From contig OZ176056.1 in NCBI GenBank assembly GCA_964247055.1, positions 4,464,001 to 4,528,000 of the forward strand: 64,000 nt of DNA. The letters run 5' to 3'. A program made the position numbers and the translations under genes. Positions 76-63,303 of the stretch are shown here, piece after piece (within the stretch, counting starts at the first letter, position 1; the number at the start of each line of letters is the position of its first letter). Source of the DNA: Paragordius varius. Taxonomy: Eukaryota; Animalia; Nematomorpha. Under the pieces are notes generated by a model that did not search any database, had not been told where the DNA came from, and saw only the letters and a list, made by a program, of their open reading frames with translations.

Positions 76-646
76 CGATTCTCAGGACATCGAGAGCTGT
101 TGTTTGAACAATATAGAGATGAAAGATAGCACAATTGAGAAAATTATGCATTTTAAAATAATGTAATTTATTTAAAACTTAGGCATGAATTCTATATTAT
201 TAAATTAAATTAAATACGATTTTTAATTTTCGAATTTTATTTAATGCGCAGCATTCAGGTTTAATGTTGAAGTTACAGATATAAATATTTTTAACATAAT
301 TGGGGAATATGAGATTGGTTACTTGACAGCTAAAAGAGAGAAGCTAAGTCTTACTGCTTATGAATTTGAATTTCACAATGGGAAAAAATTTTGAATCAAC
401 TAAAAAAAGCGATGAAATTAACCAATAAAATTTGTTTTATTAGCAGTTTTAAAAATATTTTTAGCACATCAAATTTATTTTTTTAAATCTGGGTGACTGG
501 TTGTTTTATTCACGGGTGAATTTTAAAAACCAACTATAGTCGTAAGATTAAAAAAAATAAAAGAATGATACATGTAATCATAGCTTCGGAAGCTAAATTG
601 ACAACAGAATTAATTACTTTAGGGTTACCTAATTGTTCACTGCGTG

Positions 647-681
<35 letters not shown>

Positions 682-3146
682 AAATATTTTTTATAAAAAG
701 GAGGATATAAAATCAATTTTTACCTGCCAGAAAAAGGAAAATTTTCAATATTTTTTTATTTTCAATGGTTATTTTGAGCATATTCTTTTGGTTTTGTAAA
801 AATTTTATGCCAAAATTTTGAACACTATCATATTTTTTATTATATTAAACTTATTTATTTAAGGAATTTGGTAAACAAGAAGGAAAGGGCGGGTGATAAC
901 GCATTATTACAAAAAATTGGTTCAATGAGATATAAATTTAATAATTTATCTTTTCGTAGATAAATTATTGAAATATATAACCTAAAATTAATTAACAAAA
1001 GAATCACTTAATACTTTGCTCGTTTTCATGTTGTACGGACATATCATCATTTGTGGTTTCGCCTATTCATTTTGATTTAATTTAAAATAAATTGAAAATA
1101 TATGTTACAAGTTAAGTTAACAAATACGGAAATTGATTTACCATCGCTTTCGCCATCCTGAGCGGGTCTATTTTCTTGGGGATCTTGTTCATTGACAGGT
1201 TCATTCTCTTCAACTTACAGTAAAAATAAAAATTTTTATAGACAAAATATTAAAAGAGGAATATTTATTTATAAAATGATAACCATGTTTTTTTAAAAAA
1301 GCCTTGATTTTTATAAATATAAGCTATCTGCTGTTGCCAAACAAGGAATATATATATACTGTGAAAAAGAGGGTTGATTTTTTAACAAAAATTTTCTTCA
1401 TGAGATAGCTTATGACCAGCGAATTAATTTGCGGCAATAATTTTAGATTGTTGACGACCTAGTTTTGAAATATTAAAATCGAAATCGGGCAAAAAGTGAA
1501 AATTAAGGATAAATACTTCAAAAACAATGATAAAAGTTGAGATATTATTGTTCAATTTCATTATAGGAGATATTTTCAATATATAAATAGCCTAAAATCA
1601 TATGGATAGGTCTATAAAATCTCAGCTTAAAAGATGGCATTTTTCTTTTAACATACTTAAAGACAAAATTTTTTTATGAAACTATATTAAAATATTTTTT
1701 TTATTTATTTATTAGCTAAACTCACTATTAAAATCTTAAATATTATTATTAGTAAAAAAAACTTCTATATAAAATTAAAACCAAAAAATATTGTTTTTTA
1801 TTTAACTTTTTTCATCTGGTTTATGAGTGTATAAAAGATTTATACTGTTTTATTTTGGAATCTTACATGAGTGGGTATTAGAAACTTTATAATTTATGTA
1901 AAATAGGTTTAAAAGTAGTGGAATCAAAAAATACTTACTAATCCGTGTAAAAAGTTTGTTTTAATACAAATAAATATTTTGCTGGGATATGTACGGATTT
2001 TTGGTTGACTTTACATTACTTGTAAATTTTATTTTGTATTAATTTATAAAATTTATAATTTCCCCTCATGTTTCCAAAAAACATTAAATTTTTATACCCT
2101 CATAAAACAGAAAAAAATGATAAACAAAAATTAAGTGATTCTGATTAATTCCGATAACGAACGATACTCTAACCTGCTTACTAGAACGTTGACGTCTTTC
2201 GCCAGAGAAGCTTCATAGAGGGAAAAGCGACGATATCAGTCGCACGAGATTGACCAATAACAGGTCGGCTGCACGAGCATCCTGATATATAAGTTTTTTT
2301 TACTGAAAATAGGATTTTATTAGGTAGTTTAGAGAGTGAATAATAAAACAAAAATTATTTATAGTTTCATAAAAAAATTTTGTCTTTTAAGTATGTTAAA
2401 AGAAAAATGCCATCGAGATTTTATAGACCTATCCATATGAATTTAGGCTATATTTATATATTGAAAAAATCTCTTATAATGAAAACCATAATATCTCAAC
2501 TTTTATTATTGTTTTTAAGTATTTATCCTTAAATCTCACTTTTTGCCCGATTTCGATTTTTCATTAATATTTCAAAAACTAGGTCGTCAATGTAAAATTT
2601 TTTTTGCGACAAATGAATACGCTAGTCATAAGCTATCTCATGAAAAAAAATATTTTGTTAAAATTTTTTTGCACCCAGTGTATAGATACAATGATGCTCA
2701 ATTAAATAAATTGTAATGGAATAAAATTTGGGGAAAATTAAGGATTAAAAAGTATGATTGACTATTTTTTAAAAAGTTTGTCTTTTAGTTTTTTCATTTG
2801 GATTGTATAATTTCAATTTTTACTGTTATATTTAATGGAATTAAAAACATTGCATAGAGAAATTATTAAATATAGTAAAGAGAGATTATGGATATAATCC
2901 TGTAATTTTAGGCTTTTTACAATATAATCTACTTATCTATGGCAGTAAATTAATTAATTTAAGTTTCTTAAAATAGCCGTAACTTTAAGGTGTAATATTT
3001 AAATATGCGTAAAAAAGCACTAGTACCACATATTATCCGCTAATCAAATTCTAATATCTTACATGATTTAAAATATCCAAATTGGATAATTGATTTAATA
3101 AAATTCTTAGAAGCTATTTTATCAATTTTAGGATAAACTTGATAAT

Positions 3147-3181
<35 letters not shown>

Positions 3182-6100
3182 TAGTAGTTTTGTTTGAAAA
3201 CATCCGTTAGTTGGCTGGTAAAGGCAAGTGTCAGAAAATATTTACATAGTTTTTACAGCACTTATATTATTGGCTCATTTTAATAATTAATCTGATCTAT
3301 CAATAACATAAAATAACATTCTATCATTAATATACATTTCATAAATTAAGAGCAATCTCTACTTTAAAGCGAACATTAAATTAAAAACTTTACTTTGGTC
3401 CTCGGACCGAGTCCCATCAGAAATAACATCTTCATCATGGTTTTCCTCTAATCGCGAAAATAAAAATAATTATCCATTTTAGTTTTAATCTGAAACTCAA
3501 TTTTTATAGATTTATTTTTTTGAAGTTGAAGGTTCGTTAGAATTTTCAAAAAATTAAAATGTGGTTAAGATAGAAATTATTAATAATTACAAAGATATTA
3601 CAGTATGTGTAAAAATAAGTACAAGTTTTTATTTAATACTGTAGATAACATATACACCAAAAAACATCCTTGGTGGCTATCAAATGTGAAATAGTAACCA
3701 TACTTCCTTTTTCTTTATAAGCTATCTGGCAATAACTTTAAAAACGAGCTATCCATACTTAAACCGATAAACGAGGTGAAAATTTTTATTTTAAAAAACT
3801 TATTAATTCACAATTTTATGACTGGCTTACGACCAAGCAAGGCCAGTAAAGAAAACAATCGAGTTATATCATTTCTTTTATCTTCAATACTACATGATAG
3901 GTTTTTCAGGAAGTAAGCTTATTAGTGCGATTCATTCACTGAGAAAATATTAAAATAGGGCTTCAAACAGGGTTGAAAGTGGAACCCTATGTTCCAGGAC
4001 GGTAATCGGAACTGGTTTCTTACAGTTTCATTTTGGGTTCTGGACTTTTTATTTAATGATTTTTATACAACATTGTAATTATAATAATTTATAAACCAAA
4101 CAACAGTAGTAAATCAATTATCAAAAAAAATTAAAGTGGCCAAAGTACAAAGTGTAATAAATGATTAATATTAACTATCTCATTGAAAAAAATCTCGATA
4201 TAACTATACAAAAATGATTGTTTCAAACAAATGGGTGGTCAGAATACTGCTTACATCTGAAAATATATTTAGCGTGAAAAAGTTTCATTCTATGTTGTAA
4301 GCCGTATGTACCTCTAATACCTAACATGATTAAATTCTAATATTTTTGCAAAATCTGTGGTTAAAAAAGTAAATTTGAGGTCTTCATACGGTCCGTGCGC
4401 GGCGGAATGATATATAGTGGGGCTCATATTTTTCGTTATGCGGACGCTATAGTTTATGGTTTTTTTCCAGGTTTATTTCATTAGGTACGAGTAAATGTTT
4501 TTAATGTATAGATTGAAAAAAACCACGTAATTATGTCTGGATTTCTAATAAACTGTTAATATTCAGAAGTTAATATTCAACATGGTATTTTCATTTCGGA
4601 TTACAATAAAAATGTCATCATATGATCAACGATTATTAACAACTAATATAAACAACAAATTTAAAATTTATGGTGTTCATTTGATAGGAAACTAGAAAAA
4701 ATGTTATAATACAACGTATAAGAATAGATTCCACTTATTAAAAATAAAATCATAAAAACACTTTTTGGAGGTGGAACCGAAAGCGAGCTGGTTTCTAAAC
4801 GGTTGGATATGTTAAAATCTCAGGACAAGGGTTCAGATTCCTATTCAAAGCACCTCTATTTAAAGGCATAAAAATGAAACAATTTATTTTATTTTTTATT
4901 GTCTTAATGGGCGTTTTTAGTAGGATCGTTTCGTAAACAAACATTTTATGAAAATAATACTATGTACCTTGATCTAAATTTTCCTGATTTTCTTGCCCAA
5001 TTAGATCCCTTTCATTATTTTCAGCTAAAATTATTTAAAAATTTTATGAATTATATTACTCGATTCTGGCATTGGGGTCGCAGAATCAACGTTTTCTGAT
5101 GTAACATCCTCTAGTGAAAGATTATAACAGTAATCAAAATTAAAAATTGGTATTAAATACATGAATTATTTTAATAAAATTTTATATGTAAAAAGAATCC
5201 TTAATTACAAAATATTTGGTTTAGTAACATAAAATATAAAAAAACTTAAAACTTATCGAAAAAATTCATTCAAATAATTAATTGTGTCGATATTTTGGTA
5301 TTTCGTATTATCTATCTTACTTTAATTACCTTGTCCTTCATGTAAATCATCTGTTTGTGTGGCTACATTTTTATTTATTCATATAAAAATTATACTATAA
5401 TCAGCTAAAAATTATTAATAACTTAAAACCAAATGCAATAATTTTTTATTTTGTGTAAAACATAATCTTCCTATGATATCATAATTATATTAAAATGATA
5501 AATGAAATCCATAAAAAAAGAATTCGAACAAAAACTCAAAAGTTACATTGAGATTGGGTATTTTGGGCGTTCGTATTTATTCCAGAAGGTCCCGCAACTC
5601 CAACCAATTGTGTTGAAGGACTTGAACCGATTCCTCCTACAATAATTCCTACATATGATATAATCGTTTTTCGTTAAACATATAATTTGATTGATTTAAT
5701 TTGGATATGTTGCTAAAAAATTTATATACCACCGATCGTTGCTATATAATTATAATTTATATATTTTACGAAATGAAATGTACATATTACAGTATGAATG
5801 AATATAAATTGATAGTTTTTCATTAAATATTGCCAGATAACAGTGAAATACGAAAAAAATAACTATAAGCCAACAATACTGCCCTTTTCTCTATATGTAT
5901 ATTCAGGCAATTATTGAAAAACTAGGTTTGTATACTTAATAAAATTTTAATTAAAAATGAAGGCTTTTAACCAAACAGTAATATTTTCGAAAATATTTTG
6001 TGGCAAAATTTTTATTTTTATTTGATTAAATATTGAAAACCTGACAGTGGTAAAAGTCCAATCGGTACTATAGCATGGTCAAAACTGCTGCCTAAAAAAT

Positions 6101-7448
6101 AGATTATAAATTTGCAATAAGTTATAACGAATATATTTCCGAATAAAAACTCTGGTTAATTTTGCCACAAACGGGTCGTAAATGTTTATTAATCATTTAT
6201 CATTCGACACTAAAATCTTCTGCATTATATCTGAAAAAACCTGCAATATATGATCCTTTAATACTATTTAATTAAGGAAAAACTTTGCTCGTTTTTAAGT
6301 TATTAGTCGATGTTGAGATTCAAAATGGCGCCAAACTATATTATCACGATTTTCGGTCACTTAAATCTAAAAAAGGAGTTGTTTTTTGATCGATTGTGTT
6401 GAAAAACAATTTAAATTATATCTGTTGGAGGTTAAAAACACCTCTTTGGTGAAATTACTTAAAAATGTTTTTAAAAAACAAAGTTGTCTAAATAACAACT
6501 TTATTTACATTTTGTTCAACGCGGTACTTTAACAATTCAAGTTGGTCTTACATGCAATAGATTATTATATCCAAAAATGATATGTTTTTAAGGACCACCT
6601 TGCAATGTTCATTCAAGGACCATTGGAAGCTTTTTTAAGGTATTGTATAGATTTTAGAATAAGTGTAATATTTTATTATTAATTTCGTCGTTAAAATCTT
6701 ATATTTTTGTTGATATAACAAAAAAAATTTATTGTACGCATTTTTCTCTCCACTATAGTCTTTATATTTTACGACCTAATGTGCGGTAAAAATGTAATTT
6801 ATTTTAACCACATTTTCATTTTGATATTGATTGTACTGAGGCGTTTTTAGTATCGAATGATAAATGCTCCATAAAGATTTTTTGAGTGCACACTGAATTA
6901 AAATTTATACAAGGGTTTGGAATGAGATTTTTAAAAATATTCAAAAAATGGTTTAAATTGTTTTTGGAAGCGAAACCATGGTTTTTCAAATTTGTATTTG
7001 CGTGTTGACCATATTTATTTACTATTAATTTTTTAAAACATTTAATTGGAAAATCATATTATATCTTTTAGCTTATTCAGCGCATGATAATTTTTTGTGG
7101 CTATCTTATATGTTTATGATAGGCCCATTCAGATTTATAATATAGTAGATTATTTACAAACTAAAAAATAATACGGAAAAATTAAAATCAATCATTTTAT
7201 TAAAACCGGAAACTATGGAACCGAAGTCAATAAAGAAATCCTTGAAACCCATTTTTAGGTAAAAAATGTGTGAAATTAAACAGATCCAAAATCCCCGATT
7301 TATATATATTTTTTGACCAAAAACCGTGATGCTATTAATAAAATATAAATTTTAATAAAAATTCTACCAGGTTTCTTATTATTATTGGAATTTGGAATAG
7401 AAGGATCTAAAGATCCATTGCTTTTCAAATAATTTGTTGGATTATTTT
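76..7448 (-). CDS. Micro-exon gene paralog A (most divergent; 5' end unresolved, 3' part runs off the window start)
   Basis: AG/GT-bounded exons, all phase 1-1 and multiples of 3: 7368-7448, 6041-6091, 5730-5741, 5547-5648, 5330-5362, 5060-5110, 4968-5024, 3394-3447, 1142-1213, 1015-1062, 629-646, 572-592, 76-96. Spliced frame is open: NNPTNYLKSNGSLDPSIPNSNNNKKPGSSFDHAIVPIGLLPLSATIGGIIVGGIGSSPSTQLVGVAGPSGINTNAQNTQSQSTQTDDLHEGQEDVTSENVDSATPMPESTENNERDLIGQENQENLDQEENHDEDVISDGTRSEDQIEENEPVNEQDPQENRPAQDGESDGETTNDDMSVQHENEQTRSEQLASEAMITSLDVLRI. Exons are collinear with B and C. Confidence 0.85.
649..678. repeat. (AT)n abutting the splice acceptor of the 18-nt exon, gene A
   Basis: About (AT)15 directly upstream of the acceptor AG on the minus strand. 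Confidence 0.95.
1357..2680. mobile_element. Large palindromic MITE family 1 (CACTGTGTGCAAAA termini), copy carrying the 18S fragment
   Basis: Long imperfect inverted arms (catgagatagcttatgaccagcgaa / gctagtcataagctatctcatg) with TA flanks. Tc1/mariner affinity is inferred from TA|CACTG. Confidence 0.8.
2135..2285 (+). pseudogene. Decayed 18S rRNA fragment (V7 region) embedded in a MITE
   Basis: ctgattaattccgataacgaacgatactct...cttcatagagggaaaagcgacg...gagattgaccaataacaggtc/ggctgcacg matches the conserved eukaryotic SSU motifs GGTTAATTCCGATAACGAACGAGAC, CTTCTTAGAGGGAC, GAGATTGAGCAATAACAGGTC and GGCTGCACGC, with substitutions. The TGTGATGCCCTTAGATG segment is deleted. Confidence 0.88.
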
Positions 7449-7713
7449 CTAATTTACAAAAAATATATTAGTTTTGTTAAACAAATAAAAACTATAAAAA
7501 ATAATTGAGACACAGGCAAATGACATCAGAAAAAAAAACACTGTGAAATATTTTATGAATAATAAACTATTAATTATTTGAGGCTTAAAAATTTCGTGAT
7601 ATTGATAATTTTATAAAAACTAAAAAGTTTAATTTCAAGTATTATTTGTTTTACTTATCTTAGCTGTTTGTTCATAGCTGATACATGAGGTTATTCAGTC
7701 AATCGTTGACCCC

Positions 7714-7744
<31 letters not shown>

Positions 7745-8964
7745 TTCTTATTCATGGATTTTAGATTTATATTTCACTATTTTTAGTAAACATACAAATT
7801 GTAAAACTGAGATTTCATATTCCCATATTATTTTAGATATTATAAAAAACCGAAAAATTATTACTAAAAAATTTTAATATTCGATAATTATTAACCCAAT
7901 GATTATCAACTGTCATGTGCTTGATGTGACATCTTTCTCTTGGGAAAAGACAACTAAATTATATTCAAAGATGTTGTCAAGAAACAGTCAAAACGAAAGC
8001 AAATTTTTTTGTAACCATACTATTACAGTAAAAATTGAAATTATACGGTCAAAACGTAAATATTAAGAAACGAATATTTTTTTCTAAAAGACAACCATAC
8101 TTTTTATAACATGATTTGATTGAATGTACATTGTTAAAAACTGTAAAGTATGAAATAGTGAGATATATAAAGAACAATTAATTAGATTTTTTACAGTTGT
8201 AATAATATGATTTTTATGAGAAATTAAGGTCTTAAAAAGTATGAATGTCTTTTGAAAAAGAATTTTTTATATTTTTACCTTTTGTTCGTATAATTTCAAT
8301 TTATACTACTGTATTAAGCGTTGATTTAATAAGCCATTTATAAATTAATTACATTAAATTAGTTTTTTAACAATTCACATCGCTAATTCCTAATATTAAA
8401 ACCAAAACAATGAGTAGAGTATATTTTTTTAAAAAAACAAGATTTTGAAGAAATATTTGTCTTTCATGTTTTTTACTGTAATTTAGATGGAAAATAAGCT
8501 ACCTACTGTTGGAAAAAAGTCAATAGTAAATTTTATTATATTTTTAACCAAGAGGTATAAATATATATTTAAAAAAATAAGCCAATAATACGAGGACAAT
8601 CGTATTTTAGGTTAAAATTGAAATTATACGGACCAAACATAAAAATATAAGGACAGATGTTTTTTCTTGCAAATAAAGACAACTACCATATTTTTACAAC
8701 TTTTATTTTTTAAATATAACCTATCTTTTTGGGTCGCAAAATATCAAATAGTAACTAATATAAATTGGTAACATTCTCATTTATATTCACAGAATGAATT
8801 ATAATTTTATAGTTTATGCCAAAAATAACTAGATATAAAAAATATTTTTACGTTTTGTCCATATTGTGTGTCAATTTTTACTGTATTTTTATTGATTTAT
8901 ATTTAGTTAAACTTGTGGGTTTTCTGCAAACATTTTGGTATTGCTATTGATTCTAGCACTGATA

Positions 8965-10195
8965 TCATTCAACACCTCAATGGCTCCTTGTAAGAATTTT
9001 AAACGACAAAATAATCAACGAGGAATATTTAAAATTTTTACCAATGAATAATACCACAAAAGGAAATTATTTTTTAGAAGTTTGGATCTGAACAGATGGC
9101 TGGCCCTCTATGATTGGATTAAACAAGTGATTTATTCCTTTTTAATATTTTATCCTTTCATTGCTTTATTCATCAGCAAAACTTGGTTTCGCGTGATGAA
9201 TCACTCAATTCAGTAATTAAAACTGTTGTGGATATAAACCATATTCGTGGCAGAGAATTCCACAGACGTAAAGTCATAAACCTTCAGAAAGATATGCACA
9301 TTTGATAATATTCTTTTTTACACCGCTGTGAGATGCCTAAGCCTTAAAAAAGTATTAATTAGATTTTTTGTTTTAAGACATGAAATTCTATTATTTGTAA
9401 AGTTTGACGAGGAAAAGTGACAAATGGTGGGTTTTATTAGTCTACCTTTGCGACATTACTTATAAACTTAGTATTTTTAATACAAGTTCCAAAAGAGCAT
9501 ATAATTAATTTGCTAATCAAATATTACCTTTTGAAGAAAAATAATAATATATGAAATTTAGATTTTAAGAATTAAGAAATATTAAAAATTGCTTAAAATT
9601 CGTTGAAAATCTTTAACATATGGATATACCAATATTAAGCAAAGTGAGCATTTTGGTTTATATCAGGCGCATATCATTAAAGAATTCTTAGATTTTAAAA
9701 ATGATTCCAATTTGGAGGCTATACTCAAGAAGAATCGTAGACAAGAAAGATATGAGTTTTGGCAAGATGTGCCAAATAATGAAAATTAAAAAAAATAGTG
9801 CTCAAGTTATCCTAACTGTTTTTCCCTCAGCTTACACGTGGGGGACGGCATGTTCAAAAATGAAGTATGTCAAGGATATATACAGAAATCGCTTAACCGA
9901 TGATCATATGCACGACGTATTAAAATTGGCCTCTCATGAGGCAAAACCAAAATTGTCAAAATTATTGGTTAATATCAAAATGAATGTTGTTATCAAAATA
10001 TTTTAATTTTTTAATCTAAATGGTGCAAAACGAGTTTTTAGCTGGATTTACATGGGATCAAAAATTCAGTTAATAAGTATAAATATGTGCATATGTGTCA
10101 AATAGCTATGGAATATTTGCCATTATAAGGTTCATGGCCCTCCAAAAAAACATATATTTTATTTGACCCGTCAAATTTTTTGGTGAGCACCACTG
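8965..10195 (+). mobile_element. 5'-truncated copy of the same Buster-type hAT at a different site
   Basis: 3' TIR TGAGCACCACTG ends at 10195. Aligns to 35200-36633, including the same internal deletion junction. ORF 9701-10006 is the transposase C-terminus. The left end is missing. Confidence 0.85.
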
Positions 10196-10654
10196 GATTA
10201 GTGTTTTGTTTGATTCTAACCACTATAAATTCTAATTTTTATAGTAAATAACCGTTAAAAACCGAAATTAAATAATTGTGGGTGTTTCAGAATGATTCAA
10301 ATGTTCCTTGATATTTTAATTTTAAGTACTTGCAAATTTTATTCTCTTTCTTAGAATTTAAAGGCTAAACTACTATGTTGATAAATATATTATTTATTAT
10401 TTTTATTCTAAGGATAGCATTTATTTTAATAGCAATTTATGCTTTTTATTATTTAAAATTAATATGGTAACATATAAGTAACCCATTATTTATATATGTA
10501 TTTTTGTCGATTCGGAATCGAGTTAAGATGATTTATATTTATTAAAAGAAAATATTCTTTCAAACAACCAAATATCACACTACTATATCAATCAAGATAT
10601 GATTTATTTAACAGTATATTTAAGTAAATGGTATTGCATATTGAAAAAAAATAA

Positions 10655-16333: not shown

Positions 16334-16375
<42 letters not shown>

Positions 16376-37044: not shown

Positions 37045-37075
<31 letters not shown>

Positions 37076-40050: not shown

Positions 40051-40092
<42 letters not shown>

Positions 40093-40541: not shown

Positions 40542-40580
<39 letters not shown>

Positions 40581-47052: not shown

Positions 47053-47898
47053 CACTGTGTGCAAAAAAGAGTTAATTTTTTTAATTAAAAATTATTTTTA
47101 CATGAGATAGCTTATGATCAGCTAATTCATTTGCCGCATAAATTTTAATGACGACCTAGTTATTAAAATATTAGGAGAAAATCAAAATAGGGCAAAAGGC
47201 AAATATATTACGGACAATTCAAAAAATAATGATAAAATTTGAGATATTATGGTTTGTTATCATTTTAGGTATATTTTATATAATGGCCTAAAATCATCTA
47301 GTTAGCGTTTGTATAAAATCTCAGTTCAAAACATGGCGTTTATTAACATACTTAAAAGTATTTACTAGCTAAACTCACTATTATCTCAATTCATATGTTA
47401 TTTAGTAAAAAAACTTATATATCAAAATAAAAAATAATGTTTTTTATTTTTTTATTTTTATCTGGTTTGTGAGTGTATAACAAATTTACATTGTATTATT
47501 TTGAATCTTATATGCGTGGGAATTATAGAGCGTATTATTTATTAAAAGTAGTTTAATACCAACCAACAATCCTTACAAATCCCTGTAACATACCTCCAAT
47601 TTGAATCGAAGTGTTAATTATGTTAAAAAAAGCCATCTTTTGAACTGAAATTTTATACAAACACTAGCTATAAGATTTTAGTCTATTTACATATTGCATA
47701 TATCTCATAAAATGATAATAAACCATAATATCTCAACTTTTATCATTATCCTTAATTTTCACTTTTTGTCCGATTTGGATTTTCTCTCAATATTCAAAAA
47801 ACTAGGTCGTAAACAAATAAAAAATTTTCGCCAAATGAATTCGGTCATAAGGTATCTTATGAAAAATAATATTTTATTAAAATTTTTTGCACACAGTG
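47053..47898. mobile_element. MITE family 1 copy
   Basis: TA|CACTGTGTGC...GCACACAGTG termini. Confidence 0.82.
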
Positions 47899-50269: not shown

Positions 50270-51328
50270 ATATCAAATAACTGAAGCTAATAATTAAAAG
50301 AATTAGAAATGGAACAGGAGTCGAGTGTTTATCTTTTGTAAATTATAAAAATTGAACTTTATAAAAAAGTTTAATCTCAAATAAGGGCGATTTTGCAGGA
50401 CTCAATATCCATATATATTTATTTATCCTTTTAGGATTCATATGGTAAGATTTATTATTTCGTTCAATTTAATAATGATTATACACATATATAAATCATC
50501 GTTTTTATTATATATTTAGTCTATCACGGTTAATTTATCAAACAAGCGATTTAAGAAAAATAAAATTAGTATTTGATTCTTTCCATATAAATTTTAATGA
50601 ATAGTTGTTACTAAATAAATTTTTGTTTAATTTGGTTGATCAACACCTCATTACCTTTGGATATAGTTGCGAATACCGAGCGATTTCAAATTCGATTTTA
50701 AATAATATTGGGCCAAATTTAAAAGTATGTATTCTCTGGCTCGACGCATGATATAATTTTTTGTAAAGCTCAAAAAAATCCTCATCTCAACAGAAAAATT
50801 AATGTATATTATGGTGAAATGTATATAGCTTAAAAAGCTTAAAGAAACCTTTTAAAAACAAATAATTTATAATAATTTTATACATCAGCTGCTCTTGACC
50901 TGGTTTCATGCTATTCAAATTTTGATTCTATAAGTTAATTACAAACAAAAAGGCTTTTGAATTAATAGATAAAACCAATATTTTATAATTAAATTTTAAC
51001 CCTAACAACCTTTAAAAAACCGAATAATATACAAGTTTGAACTCAGGGGTAAATTAGTTACTCAGAAATCGTCTACAAAAAATCGGTAACGTTTATGTTT
51101 TACCTTATAATTTTAAGATAAAGCCATGTTCGATTATAATCAAAATTCTACCTATTTTATTGTAACAGCTAAATAAATTAGATTTCAGCTATTATGAAAC
51201 CAATATAATATTTACAGTAAAACTCTATAATGTGGTTTTAGGCGTAAACTTAACTAAATTCGAGAAAAAATAATAAAAAACTATTTACATTTATTCGTAT
51301 GTTGTATTTATAGTTGTTTTATTAAAAA

Positions 51329-51656
51329 CTAGTGTAAATCTCGTGCTTCTAGAGGGCTTAAATTAAAAAAGTGAGCCGAGCCGACTATGTTCGGCGCAAT
51401 CGAAATATTTGAAATTGAATGGTCCAACACGTTTTCCGGAAAATTGTTTCAAAGACACAATTTTTGTGGACTTATTTTTTCAAAATACCGTTTTTTACAC
51501 GGGCCGAACTGGGGGCCTGATTCAAAAAAAGGCGAAGGTATTGTCGGGGCATTCATTAATGATTATATTTTTTCGACATTTGGATTTGAATGGGTCTACG
51601 GGTTTTCTGGAAACAGATCATAAAGCCAGCATTTTCCATTTTTATAAATATATAGA
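51329..51656 (-). mobile_element. Helitron H7 (duplicate of H3)
   Basis: Same site and structure as H3. Confidence 0.85.
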
Positions 51657-53507
51657 ATACACTTACAGTATTAGTTTATTAACAATTCACATCGCTAATT
51701 CCTTTTTTTCAAACCAAAAAGAGTAGAGTATATTTTTTTTAAAAAAACAAGATTTTGAAAATATGGTTTGACAAAAAAATATTTGTCGTTCACATTTTTT
51801 TCTGCAATTTAAATTAAATATACAGTAAAAATTGAGATTATGACATAATGTAAAAATATTAAAAAAAATTTTAATTTTAATCGTAAAATACATAATTGAT
51901 TGTGTTACCTATTTACATTACAGTATTATAATAAAAAAATCAAATTTAAAAAGTCCCGTTGTGTGCTATATAAAAATATTTGTTTTTATAATTTAACATT
52001 TTGTCCGTACAATTACAATTTTTACTGTATCTGTAGCCTTCATGACAAAGCTACCTATTGTTAAAGTTGGAAAGAAGTGATTTCATACTAATAACATTTA
52101 TATTATTTTTATCCTAGGGGTAAAATATATTCAAAAAATTAGGCAAAATAAGAGGATAATCGATATTTACTGTAAAAATTGAAATTATACGGACCAAACA
52201 TAAAAATATAAGACAAATATTTTTTATTGTAAAAAACCTATCTTTTTGGGTCGCAAAATATCAAGACGTAACTAATATCAATTGGTAACATTCTCATTTA
52301 CAAATTTCACAGAATGAATTAGAATCATATAGTTTATGTCATAATTAGCAAATATAAAAATAACTTTTTACGTTTCGTCCATATAATGTGTCCATTTTTA
52401 CTGTATATTTAGTGATTTATATTTAATCAAACTCACGGGTTTTTACTATACAATTCTAACTGCTAATCAAGTTAAAAGTGAATAATATCAATGGTCATGT
52501 TACCGAAAAATCAGCCGGCATATTTTTTAATATAAATTTTTTAGTAAATGCAAAGTGTCTGCCTCTTTTCTATATGAGTCTACTCCTAAGAGCAATTATA
52601 ACTGATTGTAAAATTATGTTTTTGATAATCATATAAAATTGATATTGATTTTTTGGCTCCCAGACAATAAACTTGAATTACAATAAGCATTTGTAGATTA
52701 TCATTTTACATTTTTAAATAACGAAAAAAAGTTAATAAGAATTAATGTTTTTAAAAGCAGATATTTGAGCCGTATATCATTGCTAAAATTTGGGGTCAAT
52801 ATGGGCGGCCCGATGGTACACTATCTAATAATATATTATTCAATTAAACTTCTTTTGTTAGGGATGATTTAATAGTATAAAACCTAATTATTTAACAAGT
52901 ATTGAACAAAAACTATGAGGAAATATTATAAAACTATTATCGTTTTGATTTACGTATCAATTTTATCCACAAGGTATATTCAATGAATATTAGTGTTTTG
53001 TTTATTTCTAACCACTGAAAGTTGTATTTATGAGGCAAATACCCTTAAAAACGGAATTAGAGGTGTTAATTCAGAACGATTCAAATGTTCCCTGATATAT
53101 TATAATTTTTAACAACTTGCATCTGGCCTCTTGTTAGGATGTCGGCTAAAATTTATGTTGGCAAATATATTATTTATTTTATTTTTTATCTAAGGGCAGC
53201 ATTTATGGTAATGACATTTTAAGTTTTTGCATTATAAATTTAATTTGATAACAAATAAGAAGTACCCCATTAAAATTTATATATTTTATCGATTCGGAAG
53301 TAAGTCAATTTACCTATTTATTACAGTATCAGTAAATATATATCGCTAAAATTAACTATTGCCAAACGTATATGCAGCAAAGAGAATTATTATTGGCTAA
53401 TAATAGTAAAAAGTGAAAAATAACTATAAGCCGATAATACTGCCCTTTGTTGTATATGCTCTTAGCAATAATCAATAACTTTCTAGCAATGTAAACTTAC
53501 TCATACT

Positions 53508-55315
53508 TAAGGTTACCAGACGTCCCGCTTTTGGCGGGACAGTCCCGCTTTTTCACACTTCGTCCCGCGTCCCGCTACTTTTTAAAATGTCCCGCTTTTT
53601 CACGATTATATAAAAAAAAATTTTTTTAATATAAATAAATTTTTTTTATCCGTTTAAATTTTTTATCATTAAGTATCTTTAAAATCTAAATTTTAAATTT
53701 AAATTTTTTATTTTTAAATTTAAATTATTTATTTTTCCCGAATTTATATCATATGATTATACACTTCCTTTCTACTACTACTGATTATCAAAAAGCCAAG
53801 TTAATACCACAAATCTCTAGATTAAAAGACGAATTGATACCACAAATCGGTACCTTACACGTTTATTCCAGAAAATTAAGGTAATAAAATTTATTATACA
53901 AATATTTTAGTTTTATTATTTGCCAACATTTTTAAAAAGCCAAATTAATACCACAAATCGGAGCTTAAAAGACAAATTGATACCACAAATCGGTACCTTA
54001 CACGTTTATTTCAGAAAATAAAGGCAATATAATATTTATTATACTAATAGTAGTTTATAAATATGAGCTCAAAAAGAGGTTTTAAATTCAACGATGAATT
54101 AATGAAAGACTTTCCTTTTATGAAAAAAACGAAGAATGAATCATCTGTTAAATGTCTTATATGCGAGGGGGAATTCACCATAGAACATGGCGGAAAGCAT
54201 GATATTACAAAGCATATGGAAACACAGAAAATAAAAAAAATGTTTGGATATGGCGGCACCATCTTACAAATTAAGCGATTTTCATCGAAAAACCGCTTTT
54301 GGAGAGGAAGAAAATTTGGCACTAGCCGAAGGCGTTTTATCTTTTCACGCCGTTTATCATAATCATTCCTTTAGATCTATGGATTTACCTCACAAGTTGT
54401 TCGCAAGTTATTCCATAAAAAATTTACATGTGCTCGTACAAAGGCTGAAGCCATTGTGTGCAATGTCCTTTCGCCACATGCATTTTCTGAAATACAGCAG
54501 TGGTTCAGGTAAAGATAATGGAAATTCTACACTTAAAATATTATTGTATGGAACATAATTTGTTTAAAAATGAATTTTTTAGCCATTTCTATCCTAAGTA
54601 TTTTTTTCTGTTGTCCATAATATAAGTTTTCATTCAATATATTTAATAATGAGACTTCATAAAAAAGTGTCATTGTGCACCGTCTTGTCTTCCAAATAAT
54701 CGTTTCTGTTTGTATAAAACATTTTTATATTCTAGCTATTCATTGAGCCTTGTTTTTCTGGATGCTTTATAATATTGCGATTAGGTAATGGTATAAAATT
54801 ATTTTCTAACCTTTTTTAACTTAGAATTTTGACCTTTGTCCTGTGATAAAAAATAGGATTCTAGGAGATCACATTTTTATAAATATTTCAATTGCTGGCA
54901 AAAGAGCTAAACAGTAACATCTATATTTTCCATCCAGGGGTAACAAATCAGTAGCTGTTTGAATAGCGTTGTGTATCTGCCAATAATGTTTTGATTAAGA
55001 TTATTCGCTAAATTGTTAAAAATATTTTTTGTGCCGCTTCTTGCATCCCCCAGCGCACTTTGTAATGATTTCGTCTTAATTACTTTTTTCTAGAATATTA
55101 CAATCACTTCACCCTTTGATCGTGCACATGTAAATTTATTGAATAAGGTACAAACAACCTGTAAGGTACAATTTTTTTATATTTATAATGTATTTGTGTT
55201 AAAAATAAATAAATATTACAATAAATTTTTTGTATAAAAATTTTTGGTTGTACGCCCCAATGACCCCTGTCTCAGATTTGTCCCGCTTTTTCCTTCAAAA
55301 AATCTGGTCACCTTA
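53508..55315 (+). mobile_element. Blackjack/Tip100-type hAT non-autonomous element
   Basis: TIR TAAGGTTACCAGA...TCTGGTCACCTTA, 8-bp TSD CTCATACT (53500-53507, 55316-55323), subterminal GTCCCGC repeats. Zinc-finger N-terminus (KCLICEGEFTIEHGGKHDITKH) and KKFTCARTKAEAIV on the plus strand. Empty site at ~31112 (ttactcattctgtaaaaaataaaatattc). Confidence 0.93.
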
Positions 55316-55444
55316 CTCATACTGTAAAAAATAAAATATTCTGTATCTAATCTAAACAACCAAATACCTCAACACTACTATATCAATCAAGATGTGATTT
55401 ATTTAACATATATAAGTAATGGTAATTCATATTGAAAAAAATAA

Positions 55445-56844
55445 TCACGATTCAGCTATAATATATTATAATGTATTTGAAATACTGTCAATTGTGGCTA
55501 AAAAATTTATCAATTTAATTATGAATTTACCTATCTCGATATCTATAGGATTGAAATCAGTATGATTGTATTTAGATTTATGATTATAGTATATTCTTAC
55601 ATTCATTCGTGTCAAGTATATCTGGAAAAATTAAATATATTTATTCAAATATAATTCGGTGTTGTGTGTAATATAAGAACTGATAAACTGTGTGGAAAAA
55701 AATGATTAGCAAAATTATTTTTTATAGCTTATAACCAGCGAATTAATTTGGCAAAAAAATTTTTTATTTGTTGACCACCTAGTTTTTAAAATATTGAGAG
55801 AAATCGAAATTGGGAAAAAAGTGAAAGTTAAGGATATTTAAAAATAATCAAAAAAATTATGATAAAACTTAGGATATTATTATTATCATTTTATCTATTT
55901 TTACAATTTATAAATAGCCAAAACTATATAGTTAGGGTTTTATGAAATCTCAGTTAAAAAGATGGCATTTTTCGTTTGAGTATACCAAATATATAAAAAA
56001 AACTATATTAAAATAATTTTTTCCAAAATATCTTAACTCATTATTCTTAACATTCATGTTTTATTCATAAAAAAAACTTATACATCAAAACAAAACGAAA
56101 AAAAATTTTTATTTTTTATATTTTTTTGTCATATGGTTTATGAGTGTATAAAATTATACTGTTTTATTTTGGAATCTAACATTAGCGGAAATTTAAAATA
56201 TATTAAATAAAAAATAGGTTTACAGGCAGTTGAATATTATCGAAAATCCGTACATATCCCAGTAAAATTATTAATTTGTGTTAATACAAACCTGTTACAT
56301 GAATTTGTATGGATTTTTGATATTTATTTCCACAACTTTTGAACCCTATTTTGAAAAAATTTATATACTTTATGATTCCTGATGATGTAATGTTTGAAAA
56401 TAATTAATTATACACTCATAAACCAGATGGCAAAAAAATGGAAAAAATAAAAAACAATATTTTTTATTTTAATATATAAGTATCTTTACTGTAATGTTAA
56501 AATAGTGAGTTTAGCTAGTAAATAATCAAAAAAATTTAATATAGTTTCATTAAATTATGTATTAAATATATAAAAAACGCGATATTTGATCTGGGTTCAT
56601 ATGACTCCCCTAACTATATGATTTTAGGCTATTTAATTGTAAATATATGATGATAATTAATCTAATATCTTAAGTTTACTCATTATTTATTTAGATATGT
56701 CGAATTTTTCTTAATCACTTTTTCTCATACGATTTTCTCTCTATATTTTATAAAACTAGGTCGTCAACAAAAATTTTTGATGGTCAAATCAATTCGTTGG
56801 TTATAGCAAGAAAAAATTTAAATAAAAAATTACCCTCTTTTTTG

Positions 56845-56879
<35 letters not shown>

Positions 56880-59800
56880 AACATTATACTAAAAATCTTA
56901 GAATTAGTTAAGAGGGAAAAAAATAATTTTAGTTTTAAATACATTTTATAGCAATATTATATATTTATACTTCAACAATAAAGATTTCCATAACCCATAA
57001 AAAATTTTAGGATGTTAAAAATCTACCTGTTAGATATTCAATCGTTTCTAAGGATACCAGATCAAATAAATAAATTTAATACAATAATTGATTATGTCAT
57101 TTTTAATATCATTTTTTAAACATATAATTTTTATAGTTATTTATATCCACTCCATATCGAAAATCCAAAAATTTTTGAATACTAATCTACATGTAAAACA
57201 TTTCTTAACAGACATCAGATATTCCAATCGCAATTCAGTTAATACAATATGCCTTGTTCTGGAATCGGCTCTACAATAACAAAAAATATATATGGTAATA
57301 TAAATATTAAAGCCCTTGATAAATATTATTATTTTATTAAATTTTTATCTAATAATTTAAATTAATATCAAAATTATACATAACATATATAAAAAATATG
57401 CATATACAGTATATTATTACCATGTAAAACATTATTGGTGTCTAAATAAATTAAAAAAATTAGACAGTCTAAAATAATTTATAAAACATTTTAAACACAA
57501 CTAATACCTGTTGCTATCTGTTCCATTGCTAAAAATATTTTTTTGATAAAATAAAGTTTTAATACTTAAAACATCCGCTTCCATAGCTAAATATAATATA
57601 ATACGGCACTTACTGTCCAATATTCCTCTAACTCCTATAAACAATATTAAAGATACACATTTACAGTATGCATTTTAATGGTTGCTTATTTCACACGATA
57701 GTAGGGCGGAAATTTGAACAACACAGTAGTGTATAAAAAAAACAACGAAATGTTAAATAAACAATTTTTTCCTTACTTTTTCCATACACTACTGCAGTGG
57801 TACTCAAACAGCGGCCCTAAGAGTCCTCTAAAATGCCATACAACCATATTGATAGTTTAATTATTATTTTTACTGATGAATTTTTAAAATACGCTTAAAC
57901 GAATTTTCGCTTATTTTAAAATAAATTTATTTCTTTAGATTTAATTTTGGTATTTTACCCAATTCAAAATGTAGAAAAATTTCCTTACATTCAAATGATT
58001 TCAAAATTTTGGCACACGTTGTTTCTGTTTCTGTATTGTATTTTCTTTTATATTTTGAAATTTTTATTGTTTTTTGGATTTTAGCAAGCCTTTTACCCAA
58101 ACTTGAATATACATATTCTCATTGCCATCCTGCATCATTTTTTATAACTCATTTCCACAAAATATTTTTCAAATCAACGTCATTTAATTTCGACCTGTTT
58201 TTTAGCATATCAAATTTTATTCCTATTTGTTTGCAAAAATTTACATATCATTTAAACATAAATTTAAAGGATAACATCTAATGCTAAAAAACGTAAATTT
58301 CCCGATGAAAATCGCTTCTTTATAAAAGGGGAAGAAAAATTTATTGTCGTTCAAATAAAAATGTTCTTACCTGCCTTATATGTAAGGACAAAATAATTAT
58401 AAAAAAATACAATATTGAAAGACATCTTAATGTGCGCTCTTAGTGAGATTTTGCAACGACAACATAATCAACGAGGAATATTTAAAATTTTTACCAATGA
58501 ATAAAACCAAGAAAGGAAGTGATTTTCTCGAAAATATTAGCACTTTTTTTAATAATAATGGTATATCTATCAATAATTGGTTTCGACTGCACAGATGGCT
58601 CTCCCTCTATGATTGGAAAAAACAAAGGATTTATTCCCTTTTGAAAAACAAATATAATTTGTATTATATTTTATCCTTTCACTGCTTTATTCATCAGCAA
58701 AACTTGGTTTCGCGTGTTAAAGATGAATCACTCAATTCAGTAATTAAAACAGTTGTGGATATAGTTTATCACATCCGTGGCAAAACATTTAACCGCCGTA
58801 TATTCTAACAACCTTCTGAAAGTTATCCACAGTGAGTTTAATGATATTCTTTTGTACCGCTGTGAGATGGCTAAGCCTTAGCAAAGTATTAAATAGATTT
58901 TTTGTTTTAAGACATGTATTTCTGTTATTCATAAAAGATAACAGAAAGTTTGATGAGGATTAATAGTAACAAATGGTGGGTTTTATTAGCCTACCTTTGC
59001 GACATTACTTATAAACTTAGTATCTTTAATACCATTCTTCAAAGGAGCAAATAACCCAATTCGCTAAAATATTTGCTTTTGATGAAAAATTAATAATATG
59101 TAAACAAGATATTATAAATAAAACTCTCTTATATTTTCCAACACTTAAAACGATTGATGAAGAAAATATGGAATTTTCGCGGAGATTTATTTTATAATAG
59201 ACAATTATATAACACTTTTATCTAATGAGATAAAATTCAGATTTCAAGAATTAAGAAATATTAAAAATTGCTTAAAACTCGTTGAAAATCCATGGCATAT
59301 GGATATATTTAATGTTAAACAACTTGAGCATTTCGGTTTTGATCAGGCGCATATCATTGAAAAATTAGTATATCTTAAAAATGATTCCGGAGGCTATATT
59401 AAGGAGTATCGTAGAGAAGAAAGATATGGAGAGTTTTGGCAAGATGTGCCAAATAAATATGAAAATATAAAAAAATGTGCTCAAGTTATCCTAACTTTTC
59501 CCTCAACTTACACGTGTGAGACAGCATATTCAAAAATGAAGTATGTCAAAAATACATACAGAAATCGCTTAACCGTTGATCATATGGACGACATATTAGA
59601 TTGGCCTGTCATGAGGCGAAACCAAATTTGTCAAAAATTATTGGTTACTATCAAAAAAAATTTTGCTATCAATATTTTAATTTTTTAAATGGTGCAAAAC
59701 GAGTTTTAGCTGGATTTACATGCAATCCGCAAAAAATTCATTGCGCAGATTTAGGTTATAAATATGTGCATATGTGTCAAATAGCTATGGAATATTTGTC

Positions 59801-62800
59801 ATTATAAGGTTCATGGCCCTCGAAAAAAAATATATTTTATTTGGCCCGTCAAATTTTTTTGGTGAGTACCACTGCACTACTGTTTTGCAAATTGCCCTAA
59901 TATAGTGTGAAATAAGCAACCATTAAAATGCAATCCGTATTTACTTTCAATGTTATTCCGCAAAACTATGTTGATATAAGTAAAAATTAAAAATATAGCA
60001 TAATTTTTAGATAAATAAAAAATGAAAAAAAAGTTGAAAATTTTTTAAGAATTTTAATTATACAGAAACGTCAAAACTAACAAACATAAATTTAAATATT
60101 ACTTTTGTATAAACCCTATTCCCATTTTATACTATTTAATTACAATCGTTAAATAGATGATTGATTATATCACCCACCAATTTATATTTCTATACTTTGC
60201 ACTTAATAAAAATAATGAATTATCTATAAGATAATTAGTTTAAAAAAGCGGTCTGTGAAAAAAACATGCGTTTGTTCATTTTGCCAGTATATATCTAATG
60301 ATAACTATTATATATATATATAATATATATATGAATAAATAATTTACCTTCTATGTAATCTACAAAAAGTATTAAAAATGATATAATTAATAAAATGATG
60401 GATAAATGATTGTTACTCTAAAATGAAGATGATGATGATTGTAGTTAATTCAGTAGTCTGTGGTTATTTATTATATAAACAACTAGCGTAAATCTCGTGC
60501 TGCTACGCAGCCCGAGGAAGTCCTTAGGACTTCTGGGAGGGGGGGGGGGGGGGGGTTATTTGAAAAAAGGGACAATAAAATGATCCGCATATGTGGATAT
60601 TTCGAAACATTATTTGATAGATATGATCTCAGAATTTTAAAACGGTGCATTCATACTAATATATTGTTTACTTTGGGGAAAAATGCAAAAAAATATTTTT
60701 GTGGATTTTATTTTTTTGAAAAAGTGGCATATTACGGGGGGAGCGGGTAAAAAGAGGGCCTAAATTAAAGCGAGACGACCATATTCGGCGCAATCGCAAA
60801 TGAGTACACAAAAATCATATTTGAAATTGAATGGTTTAACACGTTCTCCGGATTGTCTCAAATACACGATTTTTGTGGACTTTTGTTTTCAAAAAAACCC
60901 GTTTTTCACACGTAGGCCCGAACTGGGGACCTAATTCATAAAAAGGGCGAAGCTATTGTCGGGGAATTCATTAATGATTATATTTTTTCGACATTTGGAT
61001 TTGAATGGGTCTTCCGGTTTTCCGGAAACAGATCATAAGGCCACATGACGGATCTTATCGGGTAGCTCCTTACCCAGCAGCTATCATCAAAGAAACTGAC
61101 TAAAATTTTTTCTTTTAACAGGGAATAAGTGGAATCATTATTAAATTTTTACGGTCTTATACCTTGGGCGAATAATAGAATCAAAAATTATTGTGCACTT
61201 TGTTTTTTTGTAAAAAATGGCACTGGGGGAGCGGGTAAAAAGAGGGCCTAAAAAACGAGACGACGATATTCGGCGCAATTGAAAATGAGTAAACAAAAAT
61301 TATATCTAAAATTGAATGGTTTAACACGTTCTCCGGAAAATTGCCTCAAAGACACGATTTTTGTGGACTTTTGTTTTCAAAAATACCCGTTTTTCACACG
61401 TACGAACTGGGGACCTAATTCAAAAAAGGGCGAAGCTATTGTCGGGGCATTCATTAATGATTATATTATTCGACATTTGGATTTGAATGGGTCTACCGGT
61501 TTTCCGGAAACAGATCACAAAGCCAGCATTTTCCATTTTTATAATTATATAGATGTCAATAATTAAAATATTATTAAATTTTCTAATTTATCTTTTACTA
61601 TAACGTTTAATCATTAAAAAATTATTTAATATTCTTTCAAATGTTCAATTAGCTCCCAATAGGTATGGCGAATTCATATATCCAAGCTTATGGTAAACAC
61701 AGGGGGTCTACCCAATACAAATGGCATCGCAGGCCGCATTTTCTATAAATCTATGGTAATACTATAAAAAATCAAAAAAACAATATAAATACCATTATTT
61801 CACCAATTTTTGCTAGTTTGTATCCAAAATTAGGGCTGATTTAACAAGAATTATTTTTTATATATAGCACTATTTTTGCTAATTATGGAATTTTGTTATG
61901 TTTTATATAATTTTGCACAAAATATATTAGTAGGCGCTGTATGTTGGAAACCCCTAGTTTAAATTTATAGTTTTTTTCTAAGGATTATTTTCAAGATTTG
62001 GTAAATTCATAGTAAAATACTTGTTTCCTGTAATCCCGTAAAGCCTTCCCAAACACTAGCTAAAATTTATATTTGACAAAAATGTAATATATAATATAAT
62101 ATATTTGTGGATACGTTAAACTTACATTGAAAAACTATCAAATATTATAGTATTAATTTTTAATATATATAATTAGTATTTAAGTTATTTTTGAAAATAA
62201 ATTTATACCTCTCTGCAGTCTAAGTGCCGCTACAAATGTAAAAAATCACATATAACCAAAAACAGCCATAAATATTTTATATCAAATAAATTTTTTTTAT
62301 AAATTGTAAAACATATTTTGGTTAATTATAAAAGTATACATTTACTTTTTTTAAGATTAGATATTATACTGTTTAATATCCAAATTCACCCCTCAACAAT
62401 TTAACCTTAAACAAAATTCACCCTAAAAATGATTATGTGTTTTCAGGCTAATATAACTCATCATTGATAAGACATATATTCTTAAATTTCCTGTTTTAAA
62501 AATATTCTATAGGTAATTTTTAAACTTAAAAAACACATAATTTGTTTTAGGAAAATTAAAATTGTTCCAGGGTGAATTTAAATTGTTCATGGATGAATTT
62601 GAATTGTTTAAGGGTGAATAATTTGAAGTGTAAATAGTTTATCATTAATAAAACAAAATTTACATTTAAACAAATATAAAGTAAGTTATAGGCAAAAATA
62701 ATTCGAATCTATTTTTAAAAAAATTACATTCTGAGATTACTGAAGTGGCTAAAGAAAATCAACATATAAAATTTAAGCGATTAAAATATAATTTTTTAGC

Positions 62801-63303
62801 ATTGTATTATGATACATACTTTCTTCCATAATATCAGCGCCTTTAAATATAGTGATTTATTAATGTATTAAAAAATATTTAGTATATAATAAAATAATTC
62901 ATACCGATTCTTATATTATCGAGAGCTGAAATAAATATTTTTTTACATATTACGCACAGTAAAAACAGAAAATATATAGACAAAACCTGAAATATATAAA
63001 CAAATTTTTTTTAAAGCCAACCATACTTTTTGAATCTTGTTTTTATAATATAACTCAATGTTTAAAATGAAGTGGGAAATAGTGATATATATAAGCAAAC
63101 ATGATTTATAGCCTTTATTAGTAATATTAAAAGTATGTTTATTTTTAAAAAAATATTTGTCTTTATAATTTTACACGTTTTGTCCGTATAATTTCAATTT
63201 TTACTGTAAATTAAATATAAATTATACGCAAAATAATATACATGACATCATAACTTGTGAGGCTAAATTGTAAAACTAACATTACCTAATTGTTCACTGC
63301 GTG
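55445..63303 (-). CDS. Micro-exon gene paralog D (3' half; 5' half beyond the window end)
   Basis: Exons 5'->3': 63286-63303, 63242-63262, 62905-62925, 62820-62840, 62728-62748, 62209-62229, 62126-62134, 62021-62059, 60348-60359, 59945-59965, 57614-57634, 57566-57586, 57508-57528, 57421-57441, 57253-57270 (GC donor), 57027-57047, 55601-55621, 55531-55542, 55486-55497, 55445-55455 (TGA). Translation: RSEQLASQVMMSSLDNIRIGADIMEETTSVISESALRLQRVFQSSVWEGFTGLQETNYIEVLRNNIERVRGILDTMEADVLTMEQIATDTNNVLHEPIPEQETIEYLTDILDTNEYIEIATIDTES*. The 27-nt exon present in B and C is deleted. Confidence 0.83.
55686..56850. mobile_element. MITE family 1 copy in the same intron of B (approx. 10920-11630), C (31494-32340) and D
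   Basis: Family arms, differently truncated in each paralog. Confidence 0.75.
57795..59874 (+). mobile_element. Same Buster-type hAT insertion in gene D (inherited by duplication)
   Basis: Same TIRs, same TSD CACTACTG and same site as in C. Track ORFs 58443-58808 and 59299-59688 are transposase fragments (LSFHCFIHQQNL; FPSTYTCETAYSKMKYVKNTYRNRLT). Confidence 0.95.
60483..61553 (-). mobile_element. Helitron H8 (duplicate of H5)
   Basis: CTAG followed by perfect-looking hairpin CTCGTGCTGC-TAC-GCAGCCCGAG. Same internal duplication as H5. Confidence 0.88.

Follow-up and report, generated by a model that had tools for sequence, protein, structure and literature searches.

The stretch of DNA considered here, 64,000 nucleotides (nt) of contig OZ176056.1 in assembly GCA_964247055.1 of the horsehair worm Paragordius varius (positions 4,464,001 to 4,528,000, hereafter the window), carries four collinear paralogous genes on the minus strand. 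Three of them, D, C and B, are complete; the fourth, A, is truncated where the window ends on the left (Table 1). The genes span 15-23 kilobases (kb) and consist of exons as small as 9 nt, separated by introns that range from 27 nt to 9.8 kb. The window, whose GC content is 21-34% in 2-kb steps, contains no long open reading frame (ORF), and an Rfam scan of it gave no match. An initial annotation of this DNA had described a tandem family of genes invisible to ORF calling and composed of symmetric phase-1 micro-exons, and that description, including the number and orientation of the paralogs, is upheld. With moderate confidence, we interpret the window as a tandem family of real protein-coding genes whose products are membrane-anchored coiled-coil proteins and whose micro-exons are frame-neutral.

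The genes were rebuilt from all minus-strand blocks that are bounded by AG and GT, measure a multiple of 3 nt and are open in phase 1; a composition filter applied to these blocks gave three collinear series of larger exons with splice contexts ordinary for this genome. For the micro-exon series, short blocks of the lowest gene were matched to the other two genes, and C was mapped onto D by global MAFFT alignment. In the resulting models of B, C and D all acceptors (84/84) are AG, and the donors are GT save for a single GC that follows D 57270-57253. The lengths of internal exons are without exception divisible by 3, and these exons are open and in phase 1 at both ends; the AG/GT, phase 1-1 rule that the initial annotation put forward for B holds throughout, except at that GC donor. 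Each gene has twelve 21-nt exons, and the spliced products are ~300 residues long. Exons of at most 36 nt contribute 366-384 of 906-931 coding nt (~40%). Several micro-exons are separated by introns of merely 27-40 nt (12519-12554, 34408-34439, 57587-57613, 45372-45399, 22615-22647 and 5025-5059).

The exon lengths reported earlier to differ between paralogs (81/87/87, 51/48/45, 12/9, 102/99/99, 33/30/30, 54/54/57, 72/66/66, 48/39/39 and 15/12/12 nt) were all recovered exactly, as was the minimum exon size. The exon count of gene B had to be revised: 31 exons had been listed, 22 of them of 30 nt or less, and the rebuilt gene has 28, with 18 in that size class. To reach 31, the 18-nt leader block described below and two or three doubtful blocks would have to be included, among them 8389-8372. 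This last, an 18-nt candidate with counterparts at C 29355-29338 and D 51701-51684, was rejected on account of a T|AA stop at the next junction in B and C, a weak GTTAAA donor and its position within a wider conserved block. A 33-nt candidate at 15555-15523, low in GC, hydrophobic and within alignable intron, was also omitted, though it is in frame and may still be an exon.

The spliced frame is open, as had been claimed; it is important to point out, however, that this outcome is nearly automatic once the blocks have been chosen as open, phase-1 and multiples of three. For this reason selection was tested instead. A comparison of exon with intron conservation, set beforehand, found the exons better conserved in both pairs of paralogs: between C and D, 24 of 900 aligned exon sites differ (97.3% identity) against 91.0% identity in deep intron (Fisher p = 6e-14), and for B versus C the values over the 5' half, the part with alignable introns, are 92.6% for exons and 83.2% for introns (p = 9e-6). 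Insertions and deletions (indels) point in the same direction. The C and D exons differ by three indels, all 3 nt long, where 15 would be expected at the intron rate (~1.7 small indels per 100 nt, of which 30% are multiples of 3), and in the 5' half of B and C gaps take up 293 columns in introns versus one 3-nt indel in exons. That the nine paralog length differences listed above should all be multiples of three has a chance of ~2e-5 at the intron frequency of such indels. Conversely, orthologous short introns of 36, 32 and 27 nt differ by amounts that are not multiples of three, and their adjoining exons are identical.

The ratio of non-synonymous to synonymous divergence (dN/dS, Nei-Gojobori) amounts to 0.25 in the C-D comparison and to 0.55 in both B-C and B-D, with an excess of synonymous changes for C-D and B-C (p ~7e-4). 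As a control, the plus strand has no excess of blocks that are multiples of three, although transposon copies make this control noisy. Because exon and intron identity, in-frame indels, dN/dS, the lengths of short introns and the strand control agree, the exons, judged from sequence comparison, are real and under purifying selection, as the initial annotation had proposed. The 9-nt and 12-nt exons are probable members of the gene models: they are identical across B, C and D and have good splice sites, but their identity proves little by itself, since they are located in alignable intron. Between C and D, the 30-nt intron stretches that adjoin exons are 94.2% identical, against 91.0% for deeper intron, and these better-kept flanks may reflect splicing signals for micro-exon recognition.

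The paralogs also record how the family has changed. On self-comparison, 16434-40431 and 40927-63693 form a ~23-kb tandem duplication with ~88% match counting gaps, and 1-16432 is an older copy that can be aligned only in part; C and D are, on this alignment, a recent segmental duplicate. Gene B has a different history along its length. In its 5' half, synonymous divergence (dS) from C is 0.12 and introns align at 83%, whereas in its 3' half dS is 1.46 and introns are unalignable; this contrast suggests that gene conversion or unequal crossing-over has made B a mosaic, the two parts of which meet between 10744 and 7448.

Comparison of the paralogs further shows that whole exons have been gained or lost. 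In D, a 15-nt exon kept in B and C has been deleted; the region C 33700-33200 has no counterpart in D, and the D intron at this place measures 205 nt against 887+15+258 nt in C. The GC donor of D 57270-57253 adjoins this deletion, and the exon it ends may be weakened or skipped. Gene B holds two relics of exons kept in C and D, a 14-nt relic that retains its AG and GT and whose inclusion would break the frame, and a second one whose donor has changed from GT to TA. Gain and loss are tolerated because the exons are frame-neutral. This supports tolerance of exon skipping; it is not evidence for skipping itself.

The predicted proteins fall into three parts. The N-terminal heptad domain, approximately the first 115 residues, is acidic and is encoded largely by micro-exons; with 87% amino-acid identity between B and C it is the best-conserved part of the protein. 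In eight of eleven 21-nt exons, hydrophobic residues occupy heptad positions 2 and 5, and in each of the three proteins hydrophobicity has its periodicity peak at exactly 3.5 residues, a peak attained by 0.25-1.4% of shuffles. One 21-nt exon would correspond to one heptad with the a/d pattern of a coiled coil. Then follows an uncharged Gly-rich stretch with a 19-residue Kyte-Doolittle maximum of 2.1 in B, C and D alike; it has lysines on the N-terminal side, and the ~15 residues beyond it are uncharged. This stretch is most likely a signal-anchor span, and because of the flanking lysines the N-terminal domain would be cytoplasmic. The C-terminal tail, acidic and rich in Ser, Thr and Pro, is fast-evolving (B-C amino-acid identity 35%, dS 1.46), and the last 125 residues hold 31-36 Asp and Glu versus 2-4 Lys and Arg. 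As far as the last conserved exon, the B, C and D proteins are free of cysteine. The initial annotation had recognised no homolog, and none was found here in a search limited to the longest conserved exon (99/102 nt), the sole exon searched, whose profile retrieved two unrelated repeat proteins, neither of them relevant, from 1.84 billion proteins.

The initial annotation took the genes for a system akin to the micro-exon genes (MEGs) of Schistosoma, which would generate secreted protein variants by skipping symmetric micro-exons in varying combinations, with the paralog copies multiplying the variants further. Several features are in keeping with this: all internal exons are symmetric, so that any skip would keep the frame, the family has been multiplied in tandem, its C-terminal tail evolves rapidly, and paralogs differ by whole exons. 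The secreted product, however, finds no support at the N-terminus. The first 20 residues have a mean hydropathy of ~-0.1, and no upstream coding or signal-peptide exon is conserved among the upstream regions of the paralogs. ATG-started, phase-1 mini-ORFs that might encode a signal peptide were considered at A 781-724, B 16711-16636 and D 63550-63493 and rejected; they are not homologous to one another, C does not have one, and their hydrophobicity is at the chance level for AT-rich DNA. The start was placed for this reason at the conserved ATG of a 21-nt exon, and the products, from hydropathy and the upstream comparison, appear to lack a signal peptide. It also counts against a MEG-like diversification system that no other part of the protein is as well conserved as the micro-exon domain, with dN/dS below 1, and that micro-exons make up only the minor share of coding sequence given above. 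We consider this explanation unlikely.

Upstream of the ATG exon, all four copies have a (TA)n tract, 30-38 nt long, and behind it a 24-nt block that is invariant even in A, whose adjoining coding exons are ~76% identical to those of B. The stretch between the 24-nt block and the ATG exon is non-coding, since its length varies among the copies by indels of 6 and 7 nt; the 7-nt indel is a deletion in D just downstream of the (TA)n tract and 24-nt block. The block contains CAGT 6-9 nt past the (TA)n repeat, and the two together resemble a TATA-like element and an initiator more than an acceptor tract. Each gene thus seems to have its own promoter.

At the opposite end, the TGA that had been described as conserved in B, C and D is not at a shared position. 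B ends with TGA at 1006-1004, three codons beyond the GT previously taken as a donor, C with TAA at 16950-16948 and D with TGA at 41470-41468. The stops of C and D lie inside a ~300-nt miniature inverted-repeat transposable element (MITE), which provides them.

These two ends bear on an alternative in which the window holds one long modular gene or a polycistronic unit: the GT after the 'last' exon (16995, 41494 and 1015) would be spliced to the AG before the invariant 18-nt block of the next unit, which would make the four 'genes' repeats within a single transcript, or this AG would be a trans-splice acceptor. Consistent with such splicing, the 48/39/39-nt blocks are multiples of three and have kept their GT donor, in each of the four copies an AG precedes the 18-nt block, which has an open phase-1 frame, and the spacers of 368-1443 nt have ordinary intron sizes for this locus. 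The invariance of the 24-nt block even in the divergent A is a better fit to a promoter or 5' untranslated region (5' UTR) than to a linker, and (TA)n followed by CAGT has the look of a TATA box and initiator. Moreover, an ATG occurs at the same place in every unit, the stop of B comes three codons after the putative donor, and, with one span per repeated unit, successive units would alternate between the two sides of the membrane. A single transcription unit appears slightly less probable even than the MEG-like system.

We return to separate genes for membrane-anchored coiled-coil proteins, the explanation that we prefer. Translation would begin in a 21-nt exon behind a promoter made of (TA)n and CAGT, and the first ~115 residues would form an acidic amphipathic helix in the cytoplasm, built from one heptad per 21-nt exon. 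A single Gly-rich signal-anchor span would follow, and then the fast-evolving acidic Ser/Thr/Pro-rich tail. With frame-neutral exons, whole exons could be lost, gained or skipped without a break in the frame, and skipping within the heptad domain would alter the length of the helix by whole heptads. Combinatorial exon skipping is a possibility that the architecture permits.

Several points weigh against this interpretation. The topology and the coiled coil are deduced from composition only, and exons of 9, 12 and 15 nt are beyond proof from sequence alone. The leader block, open in phase 1 behind an AG, leaves room for an upstream exon or a trans-spliced leader, and the transposon inserted near the last exons of C and D makes their 3' ends uncertain. 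Of the words sampled from two stretches of gene B, a fraction of 0.00 occurs in RNA runs under the same species label; the two word searches matched only DNA-like runs. That the blocks are non-functional, in other words conserved non-coding DNA, transposon-derived sequence or pieces of decaying pseudogenes with chance AG and GT, would agree with this lack of sampled RNA support and with the abundance of AG..GT blocks in a very AT-rich, repeat-full genome, but is very improbable in view of in-frame-only indels, lower exon divergence, the synonymous excess, collinear order in three paralogs, coherent protein domains and a plus strand without an excess of such blocks.

The introns of these genes are rich in repeats, and self-comparison reveals numerous interspersed repeats in the window. 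A GC-richer repeat of ~330-390 nt is present in at least 10 intronic copies with 80-90% identity, two pairs of which are adjacent; it is probably a short non-autonomous transposon, and it accounts for local rises in GC content at 18-20 kb, 36-38 kb, 42-44 kb and 60-62 kb. A ~400-nt inverted repeat (1380-1770 and 2285-2663, 82% identity) forms a foldback in the B intron that runs from 3394 to 1213, and related copies occur elsewhere in the window. The inverted-repeat element that supplies the stops of C and D from a copy in their last exons has ends starting TACAGTAAAAATTGAAATTATACGG; further copies are scattered over the introns, for example at 16170-16230, 8270-8310 and 8030-8060.

Table 1. 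Predicted genes, protein domains, promoter candidates and repeats in the window.
Feature	Coordinates	Strand	Remarks
Gene A, 5' end only	76..646	-	same leader; ATG exon 592-572 and first heptad exon 96-76, both AG/GT
Gene B	1004..16333	-	complete; 28 coding exons (18 ≤30 nt); protein ~306 residues
Gene B exons	16285-16265 (ATG), 15953-15933, 15885-15865, 15785-15765, 15337-15317, 15238-15230, 15165-15127, 14400-14389, 12833-12813, 12575-12555, 12518-12498, 12457-12437, 12379-12359, 12216-12199, 12090-12076, 11829-11809, 10846-10826, 10758-10744, 7448-7368, 6091-6041, 5741-5730, 5648-5547, 5362-5330, 5110-5060, 5024-4968, 3447-3394, 1213-1142, 1062-1004	-	
Gene C	16948..40050	-	complete; 30 coding exons (21 ≤30 nt); ~304 residues before read-through tail
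Gene C exons	40002-39982, 39634-39614, 39549-39529, 39453-39433, 38938-38918, 38843-38835, 38768-38730, 37103-37092, 36724-36704, 34460-34440, 34407-34387, 34346-34326, 34259-34239, 34085-34068, 33180-33166, 32907-32887, 31424-31404, 31342-31331, 31297-31286, 22960-22874, 22695-22648, 22614-22603, 22528-22517, 22436-22338, 20336-20307, 19968-19918, 17724-17668, 17603-17550, 17175-17110, 17033-16995	-	last exon reads through to TAA 16950-16948
Gene D	41468..63303	-	complete; 29 coding exons (20 ≤30 nt)
Gene D exons	63262-63242, 62925-62905, 62840-62820, 62748-62728, 62229-62209, 62134-62126, 62059-62021, 60359-60348, 59965-59945, 57634-57614, 57586-57566, 57528-57508, 57441-57421, 57270-57253 (GC donor), 57047-57027, 55621-55601, 55542-55531, 55497-55486, 45667-45581, 45444-45400, 45371-45363, 45290-45279, 45196-45098, 44874-44845, 44504-44454, 42222-42166, 42098-42042, 41674-41609, 41532-41494	-	mapped from C by MAFFT alignment; last exon reads through to TGA 41470-41468
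Putative heptad domain, B	10744..16285	-	ATG exon, eleven more 21-nt exons and six other short exons
Putative heptad domain, C and D	C 40002-31286; D 63262-55486	-	equivalents
Candidate membrane-span exons, B	6091-6041, 5741-5730, 5648-5547	-	uncharged, Gly-rich; exon sizes 51/48/45, 12 and 102/99 nt
Candidate membrane-span exons, C and D	C 22695-22338; D 45444-45098	-	equivalents
Acidic Ser/Thr/Pro-rich C-terminal tail, B	1004..5362	-	equivalents C 20336-16948, D 44874-41468
(TA)n repeat and invariant 24-nt block	16312-16372 (B), 40029-40087 (C), 63282-63336 (D), 625-677 (A)	-	candidate promoter
AG ahead of leader block	16334 (B), 40051 (C), 63304 (D)	-	
Candidate leader micro-intron or unspliced 5' UTR	16286..16315	-	30 nt in B, 36 in A, 30 in C, 23 in D
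D intron with deleted 15-nt exon	57048..57252	-	exon kept in B 12090-12076 and C 33180-33166
14-nt exon relic in B	10696..10709	-	of 12-nt exon C 31297-31286, D 55497-55486
Exon relic in B	5879..5890	-	of 12/9-nt exon C 22614-22603, D 45371-45363
MITE at 3' end of C	16675..16981	-	12-15 nt past last conserved coding block of C (alignment to B)
Same MITE insertion in D	~41175-41480		
GC-richer repeat copies	19363-19753, 25567-25959, 28999-29315, 32517-32819, 37426-37758, 37900-38238, 43897-44285, 51351-51661, 60669-61043, 61160-61525		
Copies related to ~400-nt foldback	12950-14110, 25950-26620, 31500-32350, 47050-47900, 55690-56860		

Symmetric micro-exon genes, which standard annotation misses, have been described in very few lineages, and we found no literature that links horsehair worms with them. 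The MEGs of Schistosoma form hard-to-annotate families with very short symmetric exons, multiples of three in length, and long introns (PMC10526429, PMC4350168). An N-terminal signal peptide is common to all MEG products (PMC4350168, PMC10526429); the proteins have at most 189 residues, most of their coding region lies in micro-exons, splice variants are documented, and the genes are reported to be restricted to flatworms (PMC10526429, PMC4350168). The genes described here share with MEGs the short, symmetric internal exons in multiples of three, with 18-21 exons of 30 nt or less per gene. They differ in product length (~300 residues), in the apparent lack of a signal peptide and in having ~40% of the coding sequence in micro-exons. 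With neither an apparent signal peptide nor a coding region made up mostly of micro-exons, they do not qualify as MEGs. The label of a secreted MEG-like effector is replaced by that of products which look membrane-anchored and whose micro-exon domain is conserved.

Aphid bicycle genes have many small internal exons, nearly all of which start at codon position 2, that is, in phase 1 (PMC9168663). This family is recognised by gene structure and not by sequence, and it encodes secreted salivary effectors with paired CYC motifs (PMC9168663). The horsehair-worm genes likewise have many small internal exons in a single phase; in contrast to bicycle proteins, their products have no cysteine, and hence no CYC motifs, and no predicted signal peptide.

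The nearest design is that of chicken BG, a tandem family of the butyrophilin family whose single-pass membrane proteins have a cytoplasmic coiled coil (PMC5938342). In BG tails each heptad has its own 21-nt exon, the first codon of which is split; a few exons measure 18 or 24 nt, and exon number varies by paralog (PMC5938342). In P. varius, too, 21-nt heptad exons have a split first codon, joined here by exons of 18, 15, 12 and 9 nt, all in phase 1, and the paralogs differ in which exons they possess. The arrangement around the membrane is not the same: BG proteins are type I, with a signal peptide, an immunoglobulin V ectodomain and the heptad tail C-terminal to the span, whereas in the predicted proteins there is no signal peptide and no immunoglobulin domain, the heptads are N-terminal, and the would-be ectodomain is an acidic low-complexity tail. 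The genes belong neither to the bicycle nor to the BG family, and between a vertebrate and a horsehair worm a sequence relation to BG is not expected.

Tentatively, and as a possibility to which we give less weight than to the gene family itself, we suggest that the horsehair-worm lineage has independently evolved heptad-per-exon micro-exon genes, which would add another animal origin to those of the flatworm MEGs, the bicycle genes of Hemiptera and the BG genes of birds; that these genes include introns of 27-40 nt; that skipping or loss of 21-nt exons would tune the length of a membrane-anchored coiled coil; and that the present data provide, for the first time in this genome, evidence from selection that such genes exist. 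The tandem family allows selection to be measured directly, from exon versus intron divergence, in-frame indels and whole-exon gain and loss. Should transcripts confirm the models, the locus would provide a natural test of how exons of 9-21 nt flanked by introns of 27-40 nt are recognised, as well as a case of convergent evolution of the one-heptad-per-exon design of the chicken BG genes.

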